From: Selaginella moellendorffii | Taxonomy: Eukaryota > Plantae > Lycopodiophyta | Assembly: GCF_000143415.4 (NCBI RefSeq) | Contig: NW_003314415.1 | Coordinates: 223,407-261,321, forward strand | DNA length: 37,915 nucleotides | Reading direction: 5' to 3' | In this document: piece after piece, positions 7,513 through 17,933 of the stretch | How positions within the stretch are numbered: position 1 is the stretch's first letter | Layout of the letters: each line of letters starts with the position of its first letter | Position numbers and translations under genes: made by a program | Notes under the pieces: model-generated | Seen by the model: the letters and a program-made list of their open reading frames with translations, nothing else | Told to the model about the DNA's origin: nothing | Databases searched by the model: none

Positions 7513-9628
7513 AACTGGAACAGTGTGCCCCAAAACTTCCCCGTAAACCTCGAATTTCTATCCGAGATCATCTCTTCAGGAAGACCATGAACCCATATGA
7601 CTTCATGGAAAAAGAGCTTTGCTGCTTATTTCGCATTCACTATTCCCACAGTTGGAATGAAGTGTGCAATCTTTGACAACCGATCCACAACCACCATCAA
7701 AGTATCATAACCCTTAGATTTCGGCAAACAAGTGACGAAATCAAGTGTCACACTTTGAAATGGCTATGCCGGTGTTGGAATGCACTACAACTTTCCAGCT
7801 TGCTTCTCAGTTCTACACTTACATTGCTGGCATATAGGGCAAGAACGAACATAATCCACTACATCACCTTCCATACTAGACCAGAAAAATTCCTTTTTCA
7901 ATGAAGCTAGAGTCTTTGCCATGGATCACTTCCATATGTCTTATGCCATTTTTGCTTATAAAATATAAGCCTATCCCGAACTGAGAAGTGAAACATCGCA
8001 TTAGTGCGACTAGCAACTTTCGCTGCTTCGCTAGTAGGCTCTGCTTCAACAGCCCCGCATGGCATAAGATTGCCTTTGCCAATGGATCACTTCCATATAA
8101 AGCCTAAACATCCTCTAACCAGTCTAAACTAATTGCCAATATTGCCCGGAATTAAGCTTGACGACTCAACGCATCTGGAAAATATTGTCTTTACCAGGTT
8201 TATATATGATTTCAATATCATATCTAGCAAGCTTCTCTTGCCAACGAGCCTGCTTCAGCGTAAGCTTAGGCTGTGTAGCAAAGTAGCTTAGTGTGTTACT
8301 ATCTGTATAAACCTTGATGTGTCCACCCAAGTAATGTCTGTAGTGTTCCAGGGCCAACACTATAGCAAACATTTCTTTCTCATGCGTTAGCCATCTTCAT
8401 TGAGTTTCATCCAATTTCTTGGAATAGAACACAATAGGACAACCATGTCGTCTTAGTGTAACACCAACCACTTTGTCATAATCTTGCTGTAACATGGCAC
8501 CAATAGCATAACCAAATGCATCACAATGCACTTCGAAGGGTTTATCAAGATCTGGGATCTTGAGAATAAGAACTATAGTCAAGATCTCCTTCAACTGTAC
8601 AAAAGCACATTAACAAGCTAGTGTCCAATGAAATGGAATACTACTCTTCGTTAACTCAGTCAACAGAAGAGCAATTCTTGCAAAATTGTGGATAAACTTG
8701 CAATAGTATCCCACCAAACTGAGAAAAGAACAAACATTTGATATAGTGGTCAGGATTTCCCAGGACTTCACCACTTCCACCTTCTTTGGATCGACCTCAA
8801 TTACGCCACCACCAACTATATGTCTGAGAAAGTTTATGCGCAATTGTCCAAAAGTGCATTTACTTTCCTTGACATACAATTGGTGTTCACGCAATTTTTG
8901 AAACACCAGCTCCAAGTGTTTTAAATGATCCTTCAACGTTTTGCTGAAGACTAGAATATTGGCGATATATAGGACAACAAATGTGTCCAAATAATCTCCA
9001 AATATTCTATCCATCATAGTGCTAAACGTTGCTGGAGCATTGCATAACCCAAACGGCATGACAAGAAACTTATAAGATCCATACCGAGTCTTAAAAGTTG
9101 TCTTCTCCACATCCTAATCTGCCACCCGTATCAAATGATACCCGGATCGCAAATCAAGTTGCATAAAATATTTAGCCTTTAAAAGTTGGTCAAATAAGTC
9201 GTCAATGCGAGGCAAAGGATAACTATTTTTAACCCTGATCTTATTGAGTGCCCGATAGTCAATACACATCCTCATGGTTCCATCCTTTCTCATAACAAAA
9301 AGGACTGGTGCTTTATAAGGTGATTTGTTTAGTTGGATATGACTTTTGTCAAAAAGCTCCGTGAATTGTTTCTTGAATTCAGCCATCTTCTTGATGTTCA
9401 AACGATATGGAGCTTTTGTAGGTGGTTTAGAACCCGAAATAACCTCAATCTGATGATCAACCTCATGGCTGGGAGGTAGCCCTGGTGGCAAATCCTTCAA
9501 GAAGATATCCTGATTCTCCAATATCTTCTTTGGTACAGGATCAACCCTGTTGCCGATTCGAATTGAGTCACCAACACCCTCAGCTTCCATCACTTGAACC
9601 CAAAAGGTTTAACATCCCCTCTTAGCTG
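7513..9628 (-). mobile_element. Degraded Ty3/Gypsy pol fragment (RT-RH-INT), copy B
   Basis: [47 protein letters not shown] and integrase MISDRNSRFTGKFW. Fused directly to the 3' end of RLK1 at ~9628. Confidence 0.92.
7937..8069. mobile_element. ~130-bp insertion with 11-bp terminal inverted repeats (MITE or mini-LTR-like)
   Basis: TCTTATGCCAT (7939-7949) and ATGGCATAAGA (8059-8069). Flanked by a ~23-bp direct repeat TTTGCC(A)ATGGATCACTTCCATAT. Confidence 0.55.
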
Positions 9629-11293
9629 GTCCAGGAGCTTGTCGTCAATAAGCTCAATGACGTTGCCACTGTGAAACATGCTCAACGCGGTTTCGCCCAG
9701 GAAGCACAGTTGTGAGGAGGATGAGGAGGAAGAGGAGGATGGAGGATGGAACTGGATGGTGCGCCTGGAGCTGACGAGCTCGAGCAGCACGATTCCAAAG
9801 CTGTAAACGTCAGTCTTGTCCATGACTTTGGTGTGGAGCCACTCGGGTGCCATGTATCCGGGAGTTCCTCGCATGACAGTCACCACTTGGCTCTTTCCCC
9901 GCTCGGCAAGCTTGCTCAGGCCAAAGTCGGAGATTCTGGCTCGTAAGTTCTCGTCCAGGAGGATGTTTTGAGGTTTGATATCCAGGTGAAGAACTTGCTC
10001 CCAGCATCCTTCATGGAGGTATGTGAGTCCTCGAGCAACATCTATCGCGATTGAGTGTCTCTGATTCCAGTTTAACAGCAGATTTGCTGATTCGCCACCT
10101 TTGTCATCATCGTTCTTGGTGAAGATCCACTTGTCCAGTGATCCATTGGGCATGAACTCGTAGACAAGCAATGCAGCTGGTCCCTGGATGCAAAATCCCC
10201 GGAGCTTTACCAGGTTGAAGTGGTGAATGCTGCCAATGGACATTACCTCGGCCTTGAACTGCGAGTGTCCTTTCGACGAGCCTTGGATCTCTACGTCCAT
10301 CTTCTTCACAGCAACGAGGCTCCCATCCGCAAGCTCTCCTTTGAAGACGGATCCAAATCCTCCAGCTCCAAGCATGAGCTCGGGATCAAAGTTTCTAGTT
10401 GCCATCTTCAAGTCGTGATAGCTAAACTGGTGCAGAAGTATCTCATCGAGCCTCATTCCTTCGATGAGCGCTTGCTTTTCCATGCGCCTCCTCCGAGATC
10501 TTCTCCACTTCCTGGTTGCTACGAAGATTACGACGCTAAGCACCACCCCGGCCACAGCGCTTGCTACCCCAGCGATCACTCCCTCATAATTCTTTTTGCT
10601 TCGAATGGACTGTGGAAGATTACTATCAATGACATTCCAGGTGATATTTCTCAAGATTCCAATGCCTGGATCATACCCAAGCTGCCTCCACACTTGCTCG
10701 TTCACAGCCACAGCGTTTGGAGCACAGGGCTCCGTGAACGAATGATCCCTGAGACACCCGGCTGGGGAGTAGCATTCAGCTACCATTCTAGCGACCGCAG
10801 TCCGTCCGTTTGGAGCTAAAACTTGGATGTTTTTCGAGCACAAGCTTCGGTCTTGGGTATACCATCCAGTGGCCAGCGCTGCCATGGGTTCCATATTCCA
10901 TTGCGAGGACGTGCACGGCCTGAGAGACCCCGGATTTGAGAGGTTGAAGCTTGTGGCATAGAGGACGGCATTGTTGGTCCCTTGTAAATTTGGAGAGCAG
11001 GCGAAAGTCCTGTAAGCCAGGCCTGGGACGCAGCAATTCGGGCAGTCTGGAACGATGGTGTCATTGAAAATGAAGCCGGAGATGGGCTTGCAAACTTCAG
11101 AATCGCTGAGATATGGCTCGGATTGATTGCTCGACAGGTAGCAGGATGAATTGCGGAGTGAACGGTTGCCGCTGAGCATGGGCTCCGGGAAACAAAGAGA
11201 TCCATTCGGGCAGTCGCTTAACGAAGAACATACCTGTTGTTGGGCTTGCGAGTGGAAGCTCCTGGTGCTACATAGCACGATCATGAAGCACAT
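9590..11293 (-). CDS. Kiwellin-ectodomain receptor-like kinase type 1 (RLK1), non-RD, C-terminally truncated
   Basis: Hydrophobic N-terminus. Kiwellin/ripening-related motifs [49 protein letters not shown] and [26 protein letters not shown] followed by RKWRR. Kinase [25 protein letters not shown]. Subdomain XI is replaced by Gypsy sequence after ~9629. The ancestral ATG (11312) is +1 out of frame; in-frame ATGs are at 11353 and 11293. Confidence 0.85.
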
Positions 11294-11349
11294 GAGAATT
11301 CGACACCTCCATAGTTCAGTAAATACCACTGTTCTTGGACACCTGGAAA

Positions 11350-11586
11350 CCATAGAAATCAGAGACTATGAGATCATGTCTCTCTCGTTGTTTCGGCCCA
11401 CAGACTTAAAGTTTGGCAGCTGGCTGCAGCTATCTTTCAGTGTCTTGGTTTTTCTGGGCTGTAGACGAAAAGAGGAATTCCTCCCAGGGACCCGCAATGC
11501 TTTAACAAGCCAAGAGGTTCGATCTTGAGACCGCAAAGACTTCAGACTTTTTATAGAGCTTTTAAACCAGTTTACCCGTGACAGCC
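11350..11586. promoter_or_regulatory. Shared divergent 5' module between type 1 and type 2 RLKs (copy 1 of 3)
   Basis: Direct copy at ~12222-12502 and inverted copy at ~15525-15770. It lies between opposed start codons. Confidence 0.6.
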
Positions 11587-11760
11587 ATGGATCATCGCAG
11601 CACTTTCTTCGCGCTAGAAAGCGACCAATGATGTCTGTGGTGGTGAAGATGCTCGAGGGTCCCATGGATGTGTTCCCTCAGCTGGAGAGACCCGCTGCAC
11701 AGGATTCGTCGCTCCTGGTGAGCATCAGCGAGAGCTCGGAAGTGCAGATAGATATCTGAA
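11587..11760 (+). pseudogene. Internally deleted RLK2 copy (first ~10 codons joined to the last ~45)
   Basis: ATGGATCATCGCAGCACTTTCTTCGCGCT matches 12503 onward. It is joined at ~11619 to sequence matching ~14133-14270 (MSVVVKMLEG...ESS). Confidence 0.88.
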
Positions 11761-12059
11761 GAATTTAATAAGTTATTACATATATATTTAGAATCCTTAA
11801 TGAGAAACGGGAAGGACTCGAGGTGGAAGATCTGGAGGAGTTCAGCAAATGACTCAAGAGATCATCGAAACGGCATATTATAATCCCAACAACTAATGAA
11901 TGAATGACCAAAACATTTGCTTCGTCAGAAACTTCATTTTATTAGCAAGAAAGATCAATGCACGAGTTCAGTTGAAAAACCATTGACAACAGACGCGGTA
12001 TACAAGCACCACACGGCACGGCAATGCCAACCCTAAAAGTGGAAATGACAGCAATGCTG

Positions 12060-12135
12060 GAAGAATTGTACAGCCAGCAGCACTGCATTCAATTCATGGC
12101 TAGAAATCACCAATCTGCCGCTTCTCTTTCTTTTT
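12060..12135 (+). pseudogene. 5' remnant of the 3D-domain gene (MARNHQSAASL); a second remnant is at ~14480-14530
   Basis: Matches the reverse complement of ~15258-15325 (AAGAATTATACAGCCAGCAGCGCTGCATTCATTCATGGCTAAAAATC). Confidence 0.75.
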
Positions 12136-12502
12136 CGCAAAAGACCAATGCTGATGTTGGTATGAGTTCAGTTGAAAAACCATTTGCTGAAATCTTTATG
12201 TTATGACAACAGTCGCGGTTGTCATAGAAAATCAGAGACTATGACATCACGTAAGTCTCATTAGTGTCTCTCTCGTCGTTTCGGCCCACAGACTCAAAGT
12301 TTGCAGCTGGCTGCAGGTATCTTTCAGTGTCATGGTTTTCTGGGCTGGCAGACTAAAAGAAAAATTCCTCCCACGGACCCTCGCAATGCTTTAACAAGTC
12401 AAAAGCTTGACAAGTCTAGCTCCACATGAGACGGCAAAAGACTTCAGACTTTTTCTAGAGCTTTTAAACCATTTTACCCGCGACACGTTTGCAATTCCAG
12501 CC

Positions 12503-14299
12503 ATGGATCATCGCAGCAGCACTTTCTTCGCGCTCGCGATGATCTCACTCGTCAGCGCCACCGCGCAGCATTTCTCCTCCTCTTGCGGCACGAGATGCGA
12601 CTCTAGGCGCGATTGTTCTGGCGGCCTCGTTTGCAATCCTGTTAGCAAGACCTGCGATGGCGATCCAGGAGCTAGCACCCTTTCCTGCCCAATTCCCGGC
12701 TGCGAGCCCGCCCAGAGCTTCATCTACTCGAATGCCACCGCCCACGATCCCGAGTACTGCGTCGACAACAACACCTACCAGTTCTTCAATTGCTCGCCTA
12801 AAGAGCAGTCTCTCAACTTCGCGGCTCTCTACTACACCGAGCTGGAGGGAATCCCCACGGCATGCAATCGGTCCACGCCTTACAAGAACTCGGAGCTCCT
12901 GGCAAACATGGCCACCGGATGGTTTGCCAGTGGATCCTCGTGCTTCAAAGAGATTGTGATCACGGCAGAGAATGGGATGAGCGTCACGGCGACGGTGGTG
13001 GACATTTGTGCATCAACGATCGGGTGTAGCCCATTGACTGGATACTACGAGCCGTGCACGCCCAGATCGCTGGGAGGGACGAGAGGTGTGTGGGAAGCGC
13101 TGGGGCAGACGTATTTTGATAATGTGTTGCAAGTCACTTGGAAGTGGAAGGGCGAGGATTCGAAAAAACGCACTCTTTTCATTGCACTGGTTTCTAGTGG
13201 AGCGCTCGTTGCCTTGGCGCTCTTAGGCATTTTGTGGTGGAAGGTCGTGAGACGGTCCAATGCCGCCAAGAACAAGCTCCATCTGGGGGATCTCACGGAT
13301 GCCCCGCGGCAAATCAGGTACCAAGAGTTGTATCGAGCGACCAAGGGATTCCAGAGCAAGGTGGGAGAGGGAGGGTTTGGGACTGTGTTCAAGGGGACGC
13401 TGCCCAGCGGAGAGATTGTGGCGGTCAAGAGGATTGGCGGTGGATCGCGGCAGGGGGACAAGCAATTTAAAGCGGAGGTGATGTCGATTGGCAGCATCCA
13501 TCACCTCAATCTCGTCAAGCTGGTTGGATTTTGCCTGCATTCTCGCCACAACTTACTCATCTACGAGTTCCTCGCCAATGGCTCGCTGGATAGATGGATT
13601 TTTGCCAAGGACAAGTATCTGCCCTGGGCAACCAGGCTTTCCATCGCGCTCGACGTCGCTCGAGGGCTTGCGTATCTCCACGATGGATGCCGCGAGAAGG
13701 TACTCCATCTAGACATCAAGCCCCAGAACATCCTCCTGGATGAGAAGATGAATGCCAAAATCGCCGACTTTGGATTCTCCAAGCTCATTGACAAGGACAA
13801 AACTCATGTCGTGACAGTCATGCGGGGTACGGTGGGATACATGGCTCCCGAGTGGCTCCACTCTCGTGTGACGGACAAGACGGACGTCTATAGCTTTGGG
13901 ATCGTCCTCCTGGAGCTCGTCTGCTGCATGAAGGCCGTGGAGTATCCCTCGGACTCACAGATGGACGTTGGGTTCCTCGCCCAGACTGCTTTCAACAAGC
14001 TCGACAGTGGAAACGCCATGGACTTGGTGGACGATCGGCTGGTCAAAGCCGAGGACGGTGGTGGTTTATCCTTGAGTGGCTTCGAGAACATCATCCGGAT
14101 CGGGCTATGGTGTGCACAGGAGGATCCTTTGCAGCGACCAACGATGTCTGTGGTGGTGAAGATGCTCGAGGGTGCCATGGATGTGTTGGCGTTCCCTCAG
14201 CTGGAGAGACCCGCTGCACAGGATTCATCGCTCCTGGTGAGCAGCAGCGAGAGCTCGGGATTGCAAATCTCCATCTCGGTCTCGGACTTGGCTCGCTAA
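12503..14299 (+). CDS. Intact kissper-kiwellin receptor-like kinase type 2 (RLK2), non-RD SD-2b-like kinase, 598 aa, intronless
   Basis: Signal peptide MDHRSSTFFALAMISLVSATA. Six-Cys kissper SCGTRCDSRRDCSGGLVC...TCDGDP...SC. Kiwellin core NCSP, MATGWF, CFKEIVITAENGMSVTATVVDIC, GC, EPC, VWEALG, VTW. TM LFIALVSSGALVALALLGILWW. Complete kinase [45 protein letters not shown]. Confidence 0.93.
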   Translation: MDHRSSTFFALAMISLVSATAQHFSSSCGTRCDSRRDCSGGLVCNPVSKTCDGDPGASTLSCPIPGCEPAQSFIYSNATAHDPEYCVDNNTYQFFNCSPKEQSLNFAALYYTELEGIPTACNRSTPYKNSELLANMATGWFASGSSCFKEIVITAENGMSVTATVVDICASTIGCSPLTGYYEPCTPRSLGGTRGVWEALGQTYFDNVLQVTWKWKGEDSKKRTLFIALVSSGALVALALLGILWWKVVRRSNAAKNKLHLGDLTDAPRQIRYQELYRATKGFQSKVGEGGFGTVFKGTLPSGEIVAVKRIGGGSRQGDKQFKAEVMSIGSIHHLNLVKLVGFCLHSRHNLLIYEFLANGSLDRWIFAKDKYLPWATRLSIALDVARGLAYLHDGCREKVLHLDIKPQNILLDEKMNAKIADFGFSKLIDKDKTHVVTVMRGTVGYMAPEWLHSRVTDKTDVYSFGIVLLELVCCMKAVEYPSDSQMDVGFLAQTAFNKLDSGNAMDLVDDRLVKAEDGGGLSLSGFENIIRIGLWCAQEDPLQRPTMSVVVKMLEGAMDVLAFPQLERPAAQDSSLLVSSSESSGLQISISVSDLAR

Positions 14300-14672
14300 G
14301 TAGCTTATTAACTTATTAAGCAGGTCAATCGAACGGCAATTTACATATATTTTTAGAATCCTCGATGAGAAACCAAAAGGTCTTGAGGTGGACGATATTC
14401 ATTCAGTAGTTTATAAGCAGTTTCGATGATCTGTTTTGCTGAACTCCTCCAGATCGCCACACGGCTGCCAAACCTCACAGGAAGAATTGTAATTGTCTAA
14501 AAATCACCAACCTGCTGCTTCTCTTTCTTTTTTGCGAAAGACCAATGCTGATTTCAGAATCAGAACAATGAATTTTAATTATAGAATTCCTGCTGCTAAG
14601 AGATAAAAATAGGTGAGCTGTTTATTAGTCTCAATAGCAAACCAAATCTTATGATATGCAAGCATTTCCAAT

Positions 14673-15290
14673 CTAGCTGCCATAGTCTTGGATCTGGCAG
14701 TTCGGATCAATATTGGCATCCCATGATTCAGCATCCTGTAGCTCATGCTCAATATTATGGTAGTTACTCTCAGATCCCACGTAGAAGTCCATGTTGCATT
14801 CATTGTTCTTCTCCTTGTCTTTCTTGCAGGCATCATCCACCCGAACACATCCATTGTGTTGCCTGCCGTTGGGAAGCGCTAAGCCTTGGAGCAGATCTAT
14901 CTTGAGATGTGATCCAAAGGGATACTTCCCTTCATCTGGAACAGCAATAGACACGTAAAGCTGCAAGTCGTTCTCTCGACTGCCCTTGGGACCATCAGTC
15001 ACGAAGTAGCAGGTGCAATCGTTGTCTTGACAATTCACGTAGCGCCCGTCCTTCAACCTTCCAGCACCCTCAACGTGGATTTTTGAACTGAAACCGCCAC
15101 AGACGGAAGCTATCGCGTTGCCATCGCAATCCTTGATTTCTGTGTTTGAGGCCTCGTTGCCGCATAGAACACTCTCCTCTACAGTCCAGTAGTACGTGAA
15201 ACTCTCTCTGGCTGCCTCCACTGAGAATCCCAGAGCCATGCAAGCGAAAAAGAGCACAAGAGAAGCGGAAGATCGATGATTTTTAGCCAT
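14673..15290 (-). CDS. Secreted Cys-rich 3D-domain (MltA/DPBB-like) protein, 205 aa, intronless
   Basis: Signal peptide LVLFFACMALGFSVEA. Motifs FTYYW..EE, EGAGRLKDG, SIAVPD...PFGS.L.I..L.G..LPNG..HNGCVRVDD and MDFYVG resemble microbial 3D-domain proteins. Ten Cys in the mature chain and a TATA box upstream. Confidence 0.72.
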   Translation of the reverse strand: MAKNHRSSASLVLFFACMALGFSVEAARESFTYYWTVEESVLCGNEASNTEIKDCDGNAIASVCGGFSSKIHVEGAGRLKDGRYVNCQDNDCTCYFVTDGPKGSRENDLQLYVSIAVPDEGKYPFGSHLKIDLLQGLALPNGRQHNGCVRVDDACKKDKEKNNECNMDFYVGSESNYHNIEHELQDAESWDANIDPNCQIQDYGS

Positions 15291-15345
15291 GAATGAATGC
15301 AGCGCTGCTGGCTGTATAATTCTTGCATGACCTCGGAGCACTAGC

Positions 15346-15352
15346 TTTTATA
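15346..15352 (-). promoter_or_regulatory. TATA box of the 3D-domain gene
   Basis: CCTATAAAAG on the minus strand, ~55 bp upstream of the ATG at 15290. Confidence 0.6.
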
Positions 15353-15467
15353 GGAGCCAGGCATCGCCGTGCCATGTGGTGTGTGTATACCGCGTCTGTT
15401 GTGGGACCACCAGCCAGGGCAATCGTTGTTTTCACCCTCGATGTGGCCTCGTTGGTGCTCCTCTGGA

Positions 15468-15524
15468 TACGTGAAACTCTCTCCACTGAGAATCCTCGAA
15501 GAAAGTGCTGCTGCGATGATCCAT
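15468..15524 (-). pseudogene. RLK2 start (MDHRSSTFF) fused to a fragment of the 3D gene 5' coding region
   Basis: 15497-15524 is the reverse complement of the RLK2 start. 15468-15495 matches ~15193-15230 with a small deletion. Confidence 0.7.
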
Positions 15525-15805
15525 GGCTGGAATTGCAAACGTAAACTGGTTTAAAAGCTCTAGAAAGTCTTTTGTGGCATGTGGAGCTAGACTTGTCAGG
15601 CTTTTGACTTGTTCAAGCATTGCGAGGGTCCGGGGAGAAATTGCTCTTTTAGTCTGCCAGCCCAGAAGAACCTTGACACTGAAAGATACCTGCAGCCAGC
15701 TGCCAAACTTGAAGTCTGTGGGCCGAAGAGACACTAATGAGACTTACATGATCTCTGATTTTCTATGGTTTCCAGGTGCCCAAGAACAGTGGTATTTACT
15801 AAACT

Positions 15806-17933
15806 ATGGAGGTGGCGATTCTCATGTGCTTCATGATCGTGCTATGTAGCACCCTCGCAAGCCCAACAACAGGTATGTTCTTCGTTAAGCGACTGCCCGA
15901 ATGGATCTCTTTGTTTCCCGGAGCCCATGCTCAGCGGCAACCATTCACTCCGCAATTCATCCTGCTACCTATCGAGCAATCAATCCGAGCCATATCTCAG
16001 CGATTCCGAAGCCCATCTCCATAGTCAATTTCACTGCCACCATCGCTCCAGATTGCCCGAATTGCTGCGTCCCAGGCCTGGCTTACAGGACTTTCACCTG
16101 CTCTCCAAATTTACAAGGGACCAACAATGTTCTTCAGTAACTCCACTCTCAAGTCGTAAAGGCTGGTTCCTTGGTACTTGGAGCTTCTCCCATCATCTTT
16201 CTGTTGGCTCTACTCAAGACCATGGCTTGAGATAAAAGTCTGCGGCGAGTTTTTCTACAAAGTACCTCCACGTGAAGACCCCCCCTCTTGCTCTTTGTTG
16301 GTTTCGTGCACGACGAAACTTTCTGTCGCGGCTCTTTGCTGGTTTCGTGCCTTAACGAAACTCAGCCCAGTTTTGGTTTTCTGGTGAATAAAAGCCCTGT
16401 TTAACAAGGGACCAACAATGCCGTCCTCTATGTCACAAGCTTCAACCTCTCAAATCCGGGGTTTCTCAGGCCGTGCACGTCCTCGCAATGGAATATGGAA
16501 CCCATGGCAGCGCTGGCCACTGGATGGTATACCCAAGACCGAAGCTTGTGCTCGAAAAACATCCAAGTTTTAGCTCCAAACGGACGGACTGCGGTCGCTA
16601 GAATGGTGGCTGAATGCTACTCCCCAGGCGCGTGTCTCAGGGATCATTCGTTCACGGAGCCCTGTGCTCCAAACGCTGTGGCTGCGAACGAGCAAGTGTG
16701 GAGGCAGCTTGGGTATGATCCAGGCATTGGAATCTTGAGAAATATCACCTGGAATGTCATTGATAGTAATCTTCCACAATCCATTCGAAGCAAAAAGAAT
16801 TATCAGGGAGTGATCTCTGGGGTAGCAAGCGCTGTGGCCGGGGTGGTGCTTAGCGTCGTAATCTTCGTAGCAACCAGGAAGTGGAGAAGATCTCGGAGGA
16901 GGCGCATGGAAAAGCAAGCGCTCATCGAAGGAATGAGGCTCGATGAGATACTTCCGCACCAGTTTAGCTATCACGACTTGAAGATGGCAACTAGAAACTT
17001 TGATCCCGAGCTCACGCTTGGAGCTGGAGGATTTGGATCCGTCTTCAAAGGAGAGCTTGCGGATGGGAGCCTCGTTGCTGTGAAGAAGATGGACGTAGAA
17101 ATCCAAGGCTCGTCGAAAGGACACTCGCAGTTCAAGGCCGAGGTAATGTCCATTGGCAGCATTCACCACTTCAACCTGGTAAAGCTCCGGGGATTTTGCA
17201 TCCAGGGACCAGCTGCATTGCTTGTCTACGAGTTCATACCCAATGGATCACTGGACAAGTGGATCTTCATCAAGAACGATGATGACAAAGGTGGCGGATC
17301 AGCAAACCTGATGTTGAACTGGACCAGAGACACTCAATACCTCCATGAAGGATGCCGGGAGCAAGTTCTTCACCTGGATATCAAACCTCAAAACATCCTC
17401 CTGGACGAGAACTTACGAGCCAGAATCTCCGACTTTGGCCTGAGCAAGCTTGCCGAGCGGGGAAAGAGGCAAGTGGTGACTGTCATGCGAGGAACTCCCG
17501 GATACATGGCACCCGAGTGGCTCCACACCAAAGTCACGGATAAGACCGACGTTTACAGCTTTGGAATCGTGCTGCTCGAGCTCGTCAGCTCCAAGCGCAC
17601 CATCCAGTTCCATCCTCCATCCTCCTCTTCCTCCTCATCCTCCTCACAACCGCGCTTCCTGGGCGAAACCGCGCTGAGCATGTTTCACAGTGCAACGTCG
17701 TCGAGCTTATTGACGACAAGCTCCTGGACAATGATCTCGACAGCACTAGCAGTGGCTTAGAGCTCAAGGATGTCGAGAGGTACGTGAAAATCGGACTGTG
17801 GTGCATCCAACTCGAGGCAGCAATCCGGCCCTCTATGAGAAACGTCTTGGATATGCTCGAAGGTAACACAGACGTTCTTGACTTGCCACCACCTTCAAGT
17901 GATGGTAGCTCCAGAAGCTTGAGCTTGCTGTGA
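15806..17933 (+). pseudogene. Kiwellin-RLK type 1 pseudogene (RLK3), inverted paralog of RLK1
   Basis: Near-identical to the reverse complement of 9629-11312. Lesions: 11-bp deletion in the signal peptide, 274-bp insertion, ~30-bp deletion in kinase VIa (NWTRDTQYLHE) and a -1 frameshift at ~17692. It keeps the original start MEVAILM and the C-terminal tail LWCIQ..RPSM...SLSLL*. Confidence 0.9.
16130..16403. mobile_element. 274-bp insertion in the RLK3 ectodomain
   Basis: Absent from RLK1. Flanked by a 17-bp direct repeat ACAAGGGACCAACAATG (16113-16129 and 16404-16420). Can be read as TGTT...AACA (16128-16406). Contains AATAAA and a duplicated GTTTCG..CGAAAC hairpin. Confidence 0.75.

Follow-up and report, generated by a model that had tools for sequence, protein, structure and literature searches.

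We report here on a 37,915-nucleotide stretch of the genome of the lycophyte Selaginella moellendorffii (NCBI RefSeq assembly GCF_000143415.4, contig NW_003314415.1, positions 223,407 to 261,321 of the forward strand; the whole stretch is hereafter called the window), and in particular on one gene within it, hereafter the target, which encodes a receptor-like kinase (RLK) with a complete kissper-kiwellin ectodomain. Its parts, numbered by position in the window and by residue, are as follows.

12503..14299, forward strand: coding sequence of the target, a single exon of 598 residues plus stop; an open reading frame (ORF), called as a gene with an identical protein on scaffolds GL377719.1 and GL377627.1
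12503..12565, forward strand: putative signal peptide, residues 1-21, with predicted cleavage after SATA; read from the hydrophobic N-terminus
12566..12700, forward strand: kissper-like six-cysteine module, residues 22-66; from the translation and alignment to 4pmk/4x9u
12701..13147, forward strand: kiwellin core, a beta-hairpin extension plus double-psi beta-barrel, residues 67-215; from Pfam, Foldseek and conserved columns
13175..13243, forward strand: transmembrane helix of 23 residues, 225-247, with a basic stop-transfer stretch after it; from a hydropathy scan and the translation
13352..14158, forward strand: serine/threonine protein kinase domain of the RLK/Pelle SD-2b lineage, residues 284-552; from Pfam Pkinase, the kinase tree and motifs
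13706..13714, forward strand: HLD catalytic-loop triplet (non-RD), residues 402-404; from the translation

An initial annotation, made from the letters of the window, had read a signal peptide, a six-cysteine module, a series of kiwellin motifs, a transmembrane helix and a full kinase with HLD in this gene, and all of these are present. In the ORF listing the frame runs without interruption for 598 residues from the first ATG at 12503 to a stop that ends at 14299, and the transmembrane helix and the kinase continue the same ORF on the same contig, so the target is not, as kiwellins normally are, a small free secreted protein. Hydropathy on the Kyte-Doolittle scale reaches a maximum of 2.52 over residues 225-244, and the ectodomain holds 14 cysteines and four N-x-S/T sequons. 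Related proteins and loci are referred to below by our own P and L numbers.

The ectodomain is a complete kissper-kiwellin

The ectodomain matches the Pfam family PF24300 (KWL1) over residues 77-214 with an E-value of 1.7e-19 and 70.6 bits (cut-off 27), and its core carries the kiwellin motifs ATGWF, NGMSVTATVVDIC, GC, PC, VWEALG and VTW. When searched against the sequences of the Protein Data Bank (PDB) with phmmer, it finds maize KWL1 (6fpg, 1.5e-20), kiwifruit kiwellin (2.5e-19) and also KWL1-b (6ti2). The match to the kiwifruit protein extends from end to end, with residues 26-214 of the target aligned to chain positions 2-187 of 4pmk/4x9u, kissper included. The six kissper cysteines are C28, 32, 38, 44, 51 and 62, and the same module aligns with the kissper-kiwellins P0152, P0209 and P0225. 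In an alignment of 40 sequences, the columns conserved between the target and kiwellins are CSP, TGW, NG, VVD-C, GC, PC and VW-ALG.

An AlphaFold2 model of the ectodomain, built on that 40-sequence alignment, has a mean pLDDT (predicted local distance difference test) of 87.7 and a pTM (predicted template-modelling score) of 0.83, with the kissper module at pLDDT 82-91. Its fold is a double-psi beta-barrel with an N-terminal beta-hairpin extension. When the model was compared with the PDB by Foldseek, kiwellin structures took the first nine places (E 4e-16 to 7e-14). Eight of these matches have a root-mean-square deviation (rmsd) of 1.5-2.4 Å, and the other one, a full-length alignment to 4x9u_A that includes the kissper, has 11.6 Å. 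The best is 6fpg (E 3.8e-16, TM-score 0.87 normalised to the target, rmsd 2.1 Å), and 4pmk superposes at 1.5 Å; much weaker matches to loosenin, expansins, cerato-platanin, barwin-like proteins and glycoside hydrolase family 45 (GH45) follow. The kiwellin identity proposed in the initial annotation is thus borne out by both the KWL1 profile and the fold. Kiwellins of the Kissper-Kwl1 class combine an N-terminal cysteine-rich kissper of about 40 residues with a short beta3'-beta4' loop that holds one cysteine (PMC9813671), and the target has both its N-terminal six-cysteine module and a short hairpin loop with a single cysteine.

The kinase belongs to the SD-2b lineage

The intracellular half is a full protein kinase (Pfam Pkinase, 4.1e-46, 157.9 bits) in which all catalytic motifs are kept: the G-loop at 288, VAVK at 306, HLD at 402-404, DFG at 422 and APE at 448. 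Its sequence matches in the PDB are BAK1, BRI1, FERONIA, CERK1 and IRAK4, while an NCBIfam scan returned generic bacterial kinase models alone, far under their cut-offs. The closest named relatives are G-lectin S-domain kinases of the SD2-5 type, which are 50-53% identical and bear B-lectin ectodomains, together with kinases named At5g20050-like. In a kinase tree taken without LRK10L-2 reference sequences, the Selaginella kiwellin-kinases group with B-lectin kinases of Selaginella and Marchantia (support 88-89), apart from the outgroups. The initial annotation had raised SD-2b as a possible affiliation, and by its kinase clade the target does fall there.

The ectodomain of the target is KWL1, and the Pfam search gave no match to the B-lectin or S-domain families PF01453, PF00954 or PF08276. 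The usual B-lectin ectodomain of an SD-2b kinase has been swapped entirely for a kissper-kiwellin module. We considered the HLD triplet as a special adaptation of this receptor and rejected the idea, since the same triplet is carried by 98 of the 118 SD-2b-type relatives and is therefore the norm of the lineage; the non-RD status is inherited and marks ancestry. Of what had been claimed for the kinase, then, the non-RD loop stands, but it is weak evidence for pattern recognition.

The gene is intact and its coverage is consistent with transcription

The target protein is called as a gene on two S. moellendorffii scaffolds (GCA_000143415.2), namely GL377719.1, which matches the window exactly, and GL377627.1, which represents the other haplotype. 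Over the 1797 nucleotides of the coding sequence the two differ by one synonymous change, leaving the protein identical, and past the neighbouring gene they diverge by about 8%. Contigs from four runs of four studies, whose RNA nature is a guess, were placed on positions 11500-15600. They cover about 12512-14512 at an identity of at least 99% and without joints, and leave 11500-12458 and 15336-15600 uncovered; a single contig of 1260 nucleotides crosses the ectodomain, the transmembrane helix and the kinase. Because this coverage ends at gene boundaries, and because the neighbouring gene is missing from one of the runs, it fits transcripts and does not fit genomic DNA. The ratio of nonsynonymous to synonymous substitution rates (dN/dS) between the target and its closest paralogue, P0001, is 0.40 in the ectodomain and 0.15 in the kinase, which indicates that both halves are constrained and that the ectodomain is changing faster. 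The target is an intact gene with coverage consistent with transcription, so that the ORF put forward in the initial annotation also passes this check, given runs that are RNA by guess.

The kiwellin-kinase family in Selaginella

When the ectodomain was searched exhaustively with phmmer against 1.84 billion representatives, 176 proteins came out at E <=1e-3, most of them of kiwellin size and very few of them long. The target is not alone. Proteins with both KWL1 and Pkinase form at least six clusters at 90% identity in S. moellendorffii (the target; P0001; P0144/P0273; P0023/P0279; P0026/P0281/P0283; P0031/P0287), and at least five other full-length paralogues share its domain order. Where the initial annotation had described one receptor, there is thus a family, with an independent fusion in angiosperms besides.

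In a tree of kiwellin domains, all Selaginella ectodomains form one clade (100/99) whose inner topology is the same as in the kinase tree. A single ectodomain clade and a congruent kinase tree point to one fusion, followed by duplication in which both halves diverged together. Both trees divide the family into a type B (target, P0001, P0023) and a type A (P0031, P0026, P0273). Three head-to-head pairs, each made of one type-A and one type-B gene, are found in the target window, at P0144/P0001 and at P0031/P0023, and in both trees the two types are older than the duplications of the pairs. Other genes lie close to the pairs: one for an NADPH oxidase with RBOH-type domains adjoins P0031/P0023 (L008, 897-4681), and L007 holds two more, for a class III peroxidase (9945-11086, after P0001) and for a basic secretory protein (BSP; within the span of the type-A gene model).

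The RefSeq names of these proteins refer to lectin, L-lectin or At5g20050 kinases, and PERK is also used. Older "partial" gene models hold the kiwellin part or the kinase part alone (e.g., P0123 of 213 residues, P0272 of 180 residues; P0002 to P0004). As a side observation, P0123, P0272, P0274-P0278, P0280 and P0284-P0286 are fragments of kiwellin-kinase genes, 134-216 residues long, that could pass as free kiwellins in surveys. Given the misleading names and the split gene models, family surveys may have miscounted both kiwellins and RLK types.

A second origin in angiosperms

A word-based search with the target ectodomain, aimed at long relatives, found Selaginella only; the angiosperm fusions came to light in the exhaustive search and then in a renewed search with one of them, P0156. 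This protein lies on a metagenome contig from the Joint Genome Institute (JGI) and belongs to a cactus-like clade; in its kiwellin domain it shares 86% identity with a protein of Carnegiea gigantea. P0316 comes from the Cuscuta campestris genome (OOIL02002078.1, L006 6001-8030), where the gene has one intron and ordinary plant neighbours. P0299, P0317 and P0324 are Logan contigs; P0299 and P0324 are cactus-like, and P0317 is close to Cuscuta. All of these members have KWL1 and an HLD kinase, with a hydrophobic stretch between the two domains in the full-length P0156, P0299, P0316 and P0317; P0324 retains just the end of the kiwellin domain.

The kinases of these proteins form a clade (100/100) within the angiosperm SD2-5 group (96/98), and the tree of kiwellin domains likewise puts these proteins within the angiosperm kiwellins, at a distance from the Selaginella clade. 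Constraining all kiwellin-kinases to a single clade costs 60.5 log-likelihood units and is rejected by the approximately unbiased (AU) test (p-AU 2e-5), which was run after the tree had been seen, on a hypothesis set beforehand. A single origin of all kiwellin-kinases is accordingly rejected by the kinase tree, the AU test and the kiwellin-domain tree, and it follows from the separate placements and from the AU rejection that kiwellin joined an SD-2b kinase at least twice. The independent fusions to SD-2b kinases in a lycophyte and in angiosperms suggest that the combination was selected or useful rather than accidental. We also considered whether short At5g20050-like RLKs might be the angiosperm orthologues, with a kiwellin that has degenerated; this was rejected, as P0120 is without a KWL1 match and nests beside Eucalyptus SD2-5.

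The angiosperm kiwellin-kinases turned up only in the parasitic Cuscuta, with its close relative P0317, and in the cactus-like clade. Loss in other lineages, gaps in the databases or transfer between host and parasite could each explain this patchy spread. Two further observations concern the distribution of the kiwellin domain at large. Kiwellins have been reported in land plants and one fungus only (PMC9813671), and among the best ectodomain matches (3.3e-23) is P0126, a kiwellin-like protein of 280 residues from the zygnematophycean alga Closterium sp. NIES-65. Additionally, KWL1 occurs with F-box/LRR/FBD, PI4-kinase or PP2 domains in the long proteins P0130 (Eragrostis curvula, 1875 residues), P0318, P0320 and P0323, which are probably merged gene models.

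Surroundings of the target

The target is the sole clearly intact kiwellin-kinase gene in the window. Its neighbours are as follows.

9590..11353, reverse strand: type-A kiwellin receptor kinase, head-to-head neighbour of the target, 3'-truncated in this haplotype; from Pfam and tblastn
11619..11756, forward strand: remnant of the C-terminal tail of a gene of the target type, between genes A and B; from tblastn, 81% identity to target residues 544-591
14673..15290, reverse strand: secreted 205-residue 3D-domain-like protein, convergent to the target; called gene in both haplotypes
15806..17894, forward strand: A', an inverted duplicate of the type-A gene with its frame broken near the 5' end; from inverted repeats and tblastn

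The type-A neighbour has KWL1 (1.9e-22) and a Pkinase match that ends at model position 199 of 263. It corresponds to residues 5-540 of P0283, the intact 618-residue allele on the other haplotype, the remainder of which is missing from the window. Reverse-transcriptase ORFs (RVT_1) at 8613-9593 begin exactly where the gene loses its last ~78 residues. Taken together, the partial match and the abutting ORFs indicate that in this haplotype the gene has either lost its 3' end or taken up a large insertion. A large inverted duplication of the type-A gene (9667-10988 / 16401-17692, 97-98% identical) encloses both the target and the 3D-like gene. The tblastn pieces of A' lie in different frames, with breaks at about 15853 and 16010, and a 421-residue ORF within it holds partial KWL1 and Pkinase.

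Between the two receptor genes, the stretches 11366-11756 and 12024-12206 contain remnants of two genes, namely the C-terminal tail of one of the target type and the N-terminus of one of the 3D-like type, the tail being part of a direct repeat that is 94% identical to 14191-14268. These relics appear to be traces of an older unit of a type-B receptor and a 3D-like gene. The 205-residue neighbour itself has no Pfam or NCBIfam match; it has an Atlas feature score of 0.96 to a '3d domain protein' cluster and a TM-score of 0.77 to a PF06725 cluster, and the clusters nearest to it come from fungi (Zoopagomycota, Mucoromycota) and bacteria. Contigs from two of the four runs match it, and one nucleotide differs between the haplotypes. 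A similar 3D-like gene, merged into gene model P0003, adjoins a broken copy that resembles the target at a further locus. The 205-residue protein is linked to the target by position, and a functional tie is putative.

What the receptor may do, and the alternatives

The explanation we favour, and hold to be moderately probable, is that the target is intact and transcribed and encodes a receptor kinase that crosses the plasma membrane once, in which the kiwellin would sense an extracellular ligand and the non-RD kinase would signal defence. The kiwellin domain would face the apoplast and bind its ligand there, and binding would activate the kinase, probably with a partner kinase, and so lead to defence signalling. 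By analogy with maize KWL1, which binds Ustilago Cmu1, the likeliest candidate for a ligand would be a secreted microbial protein, an identity that we regard as quite possible, if somewhat short of an even chance. It is favoured because the sole known kiwellin ligands are proteins (Cmu1), and because local duplication, broken copies and a faster-changing ectodomain are typical of immune receptors; on the same analogy, effector sensing by the target is plausible. A bolder and rather doubtful extension would see the kiwellin receptor kinases as cell-surface immune receptors with a built-in effector-inhibitor bait, wired to SD-2b kinases twice, in lycophytes and in angiosperms. The initial annotation had likened the receptor to an integrated decoy. 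The analogy holds in concept, but kiwellin is an effector inhibitor and not an effector target.

Several points weigh against a defence receptor of this kind. The ectodomain is just 28-34% identical to characterised kiwellins. In the 40-sequence alignment it is without the angiosperm-type GGDGGGPSECD loop and without the paired CC of the hairpin, so that it may bind ligands that have nothing to do with chorismate mutases. Other double-psi beta-barrel proteins, namely expansins, loosenins, barwin and cerato-platanins, bind glycans. The HLD triplet, as a lineage trait, is weak evidence for pattern recognition, and the RNA origin of the four runs is only guessed.

Some of these points would be accommodated by a sensor of the cell wall or of an endogenous signal, in which the barrel would have as its ligand a glycan of plant or microbial origin, or else a peptide or protein that is endogenous, and the receptor would report wall integrity or development instead of a pathogen effector. 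We think this rather unlikely, but it is a serious competitor: the fold matches next after the kiwellins (loosenin, expansins, cerato-platanin, barwin-like proteins, GH45) bind or act on polysaccharides, SD-2b kinases normally bear lectin ectodomains (PF01453), and the loops that the target lacks are conserved in the effector-binding angiosperm kiwellins. On the other hand, we know of no report of glycan binding by kiwellins. Their demonstrated ligands are proteins only (Cmu1; 6fpg, 6ti2), and the contrast in dN/dS between ectodomain (0.40) and kinase (0.15), the local duplication and the broken copy fit an arms-race receptor at least equally well. Free kiwellins are stoichiometric inhibitors of Cmu1 (PMC9813671), and one could therefore imagine the target as a membrane-tethered inhibitor that neutralises a secreted microbial enzyme, its kinase signalling being secondary or dispensable. 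This is improbable: within the protein, constraint is strongest in the kinase, which has kept every catalytic motif and has co-diverged with the ectodomain since the fusion, and a dispensable kinase would not be expected to behave so.

A different proposal concerns the pairing of the genes, with the type-B target acting only as a heteromer with its divergent type-A neighbour. The three head-to-head A/B pairs speak for such an obligate two-receptor unit, as does the age of the two types, which predate the pair duplications in the trees. Both type-A copies beside the target are damaged, yet the target is intact, conserved and transcribed, which weakens pairing in cis and leaves the obligate unit unlikely; action in trans is possible through intact type-A genes on the other haplotype and at other loci. 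A complex prediction with target residues 22-221 and type-A residues 40-262 gave a score of 0.00 with controls not run, and counts neither way. Finally, kiwellin and kinase might have been joined by chance read-through, as an annotation or assembly artefact or a pseudogene, and the kiwellin-only and kinase-only fragments among the older gene models of the family would be in keeping with this. It is nonetheless extremely improbable in view of the uninterrupted ORF, the identical protein on two scaffolds with differing flanks, the contig across the domain junctions, dN/dS below 1 in both halves and the full-length paralogues with the same domain order.

Novelty and implications

The initial annotation had singled out kiwellin as an ectodomain absent from the RLK types it listed, and our literature search likewise gave no description of such a receptor kinase: none was found in the kiwellin papers since 2022, the family review, work on the evolution of S-domain RLKs or RLK surveys. 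A survey of 61 larger kiwellin-domain proteins identified no further domain in 30 of them, most of the others being duplications of the kiwellin domain (PMC9813671). The proteins described here are public under misleading names, and Pfam shows both of their domains, so the novelty lies in recognition and interpretation and not in the sequences.

Kiwellin is an additional ectodomain class in the RLK repertoire. Only two kiwellins, against roughly 900 others, have a known biochemical role, which is to inhibit a fungal chorismate mutase. A kiwellin-kinase fusion offers a direct readout for kiwellin ligands, for instance by means of chimeric receptors or ectodomain pull-downs. If the immune-receptor reading is true, it would additionally show a general route from apoplastic inhibitor to receptor.

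Comparison with known systems

Among free kiwellins, maize KWL1 and KWL1-b (6fpg, 6ti2) share with the target their fold (TM-score 0.81-0.88 normalised to the target, rmsd 2.1-2.4 Å), the PF24300 domain, the barrel motifs and the cysteines. Kiwellins bind and stoichiometrically inhibit the secreted Ustilago chorismate mutase Cmu1 (PMC9813671; titles of 6fpg and 6ti2). The maize proteins, inhibitors of this fungal effector, are free, secreted, about 150-200 residues long and without kissper, whereas the target, at its low identity to them, has a kissper but no GGDGGG-type loop and continues into a transmembrane helix and a kinase. The kiwifruit kiwellin Act d 5 (4pmk, 4x9u) resembles it from end to end in kissper and core and in the short single-cysteine hairpin loop, but it is an allergen of the fruit, soluble and with neither anchor nor kinase.

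On the kinase side, SD-2b kinases of the SD2-5/At4g32300 type have the same HLDIKPQN loop and the kinase similarity noted above, and differ in an ectodomain of B-lectin, S-locus and PAN domains (PF01453, PF08276) where the target has kiwellin. Rice Pi-d2 is reportedly placed among the SD-2b S-domain receptor kinases. The angiosperm kiwellin-kinases (P0316; P0156, P0299, P0324; P0317) have signal peptide, kiwellin, transmembrane helix and SD-2b-type HLD kinase in the same order as the target, but no kissper, and are of independent origin.

Several RLK/Pelle kinases bear ectodomains of secreted defence proteins, namely PR5K (thaumatin), the cysteine-rich receptor-like kinases (CRKs; DUF26/Gnk2-like) and CHRK1 (chitinase-like). 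These are like the target in using a secreted pathogenesis-related fold as ectodomain, and unlike it in their folds and kinase subfamilies; by this parallel, the target would join the RLKs, such as PR5K or CRKs, that took their ectodomain from a secreted defence protein. The integrated decoys of nucleotide-binding leucine-rich repeat receptors (NLRs) similarly wire a pathogen-interacting domain to an immune signalling module. They are intracellular and mimic effector targets, whereas the module of the target is extracellular and comes from an effector inhibitor, with a sensing role suggested by analogy.

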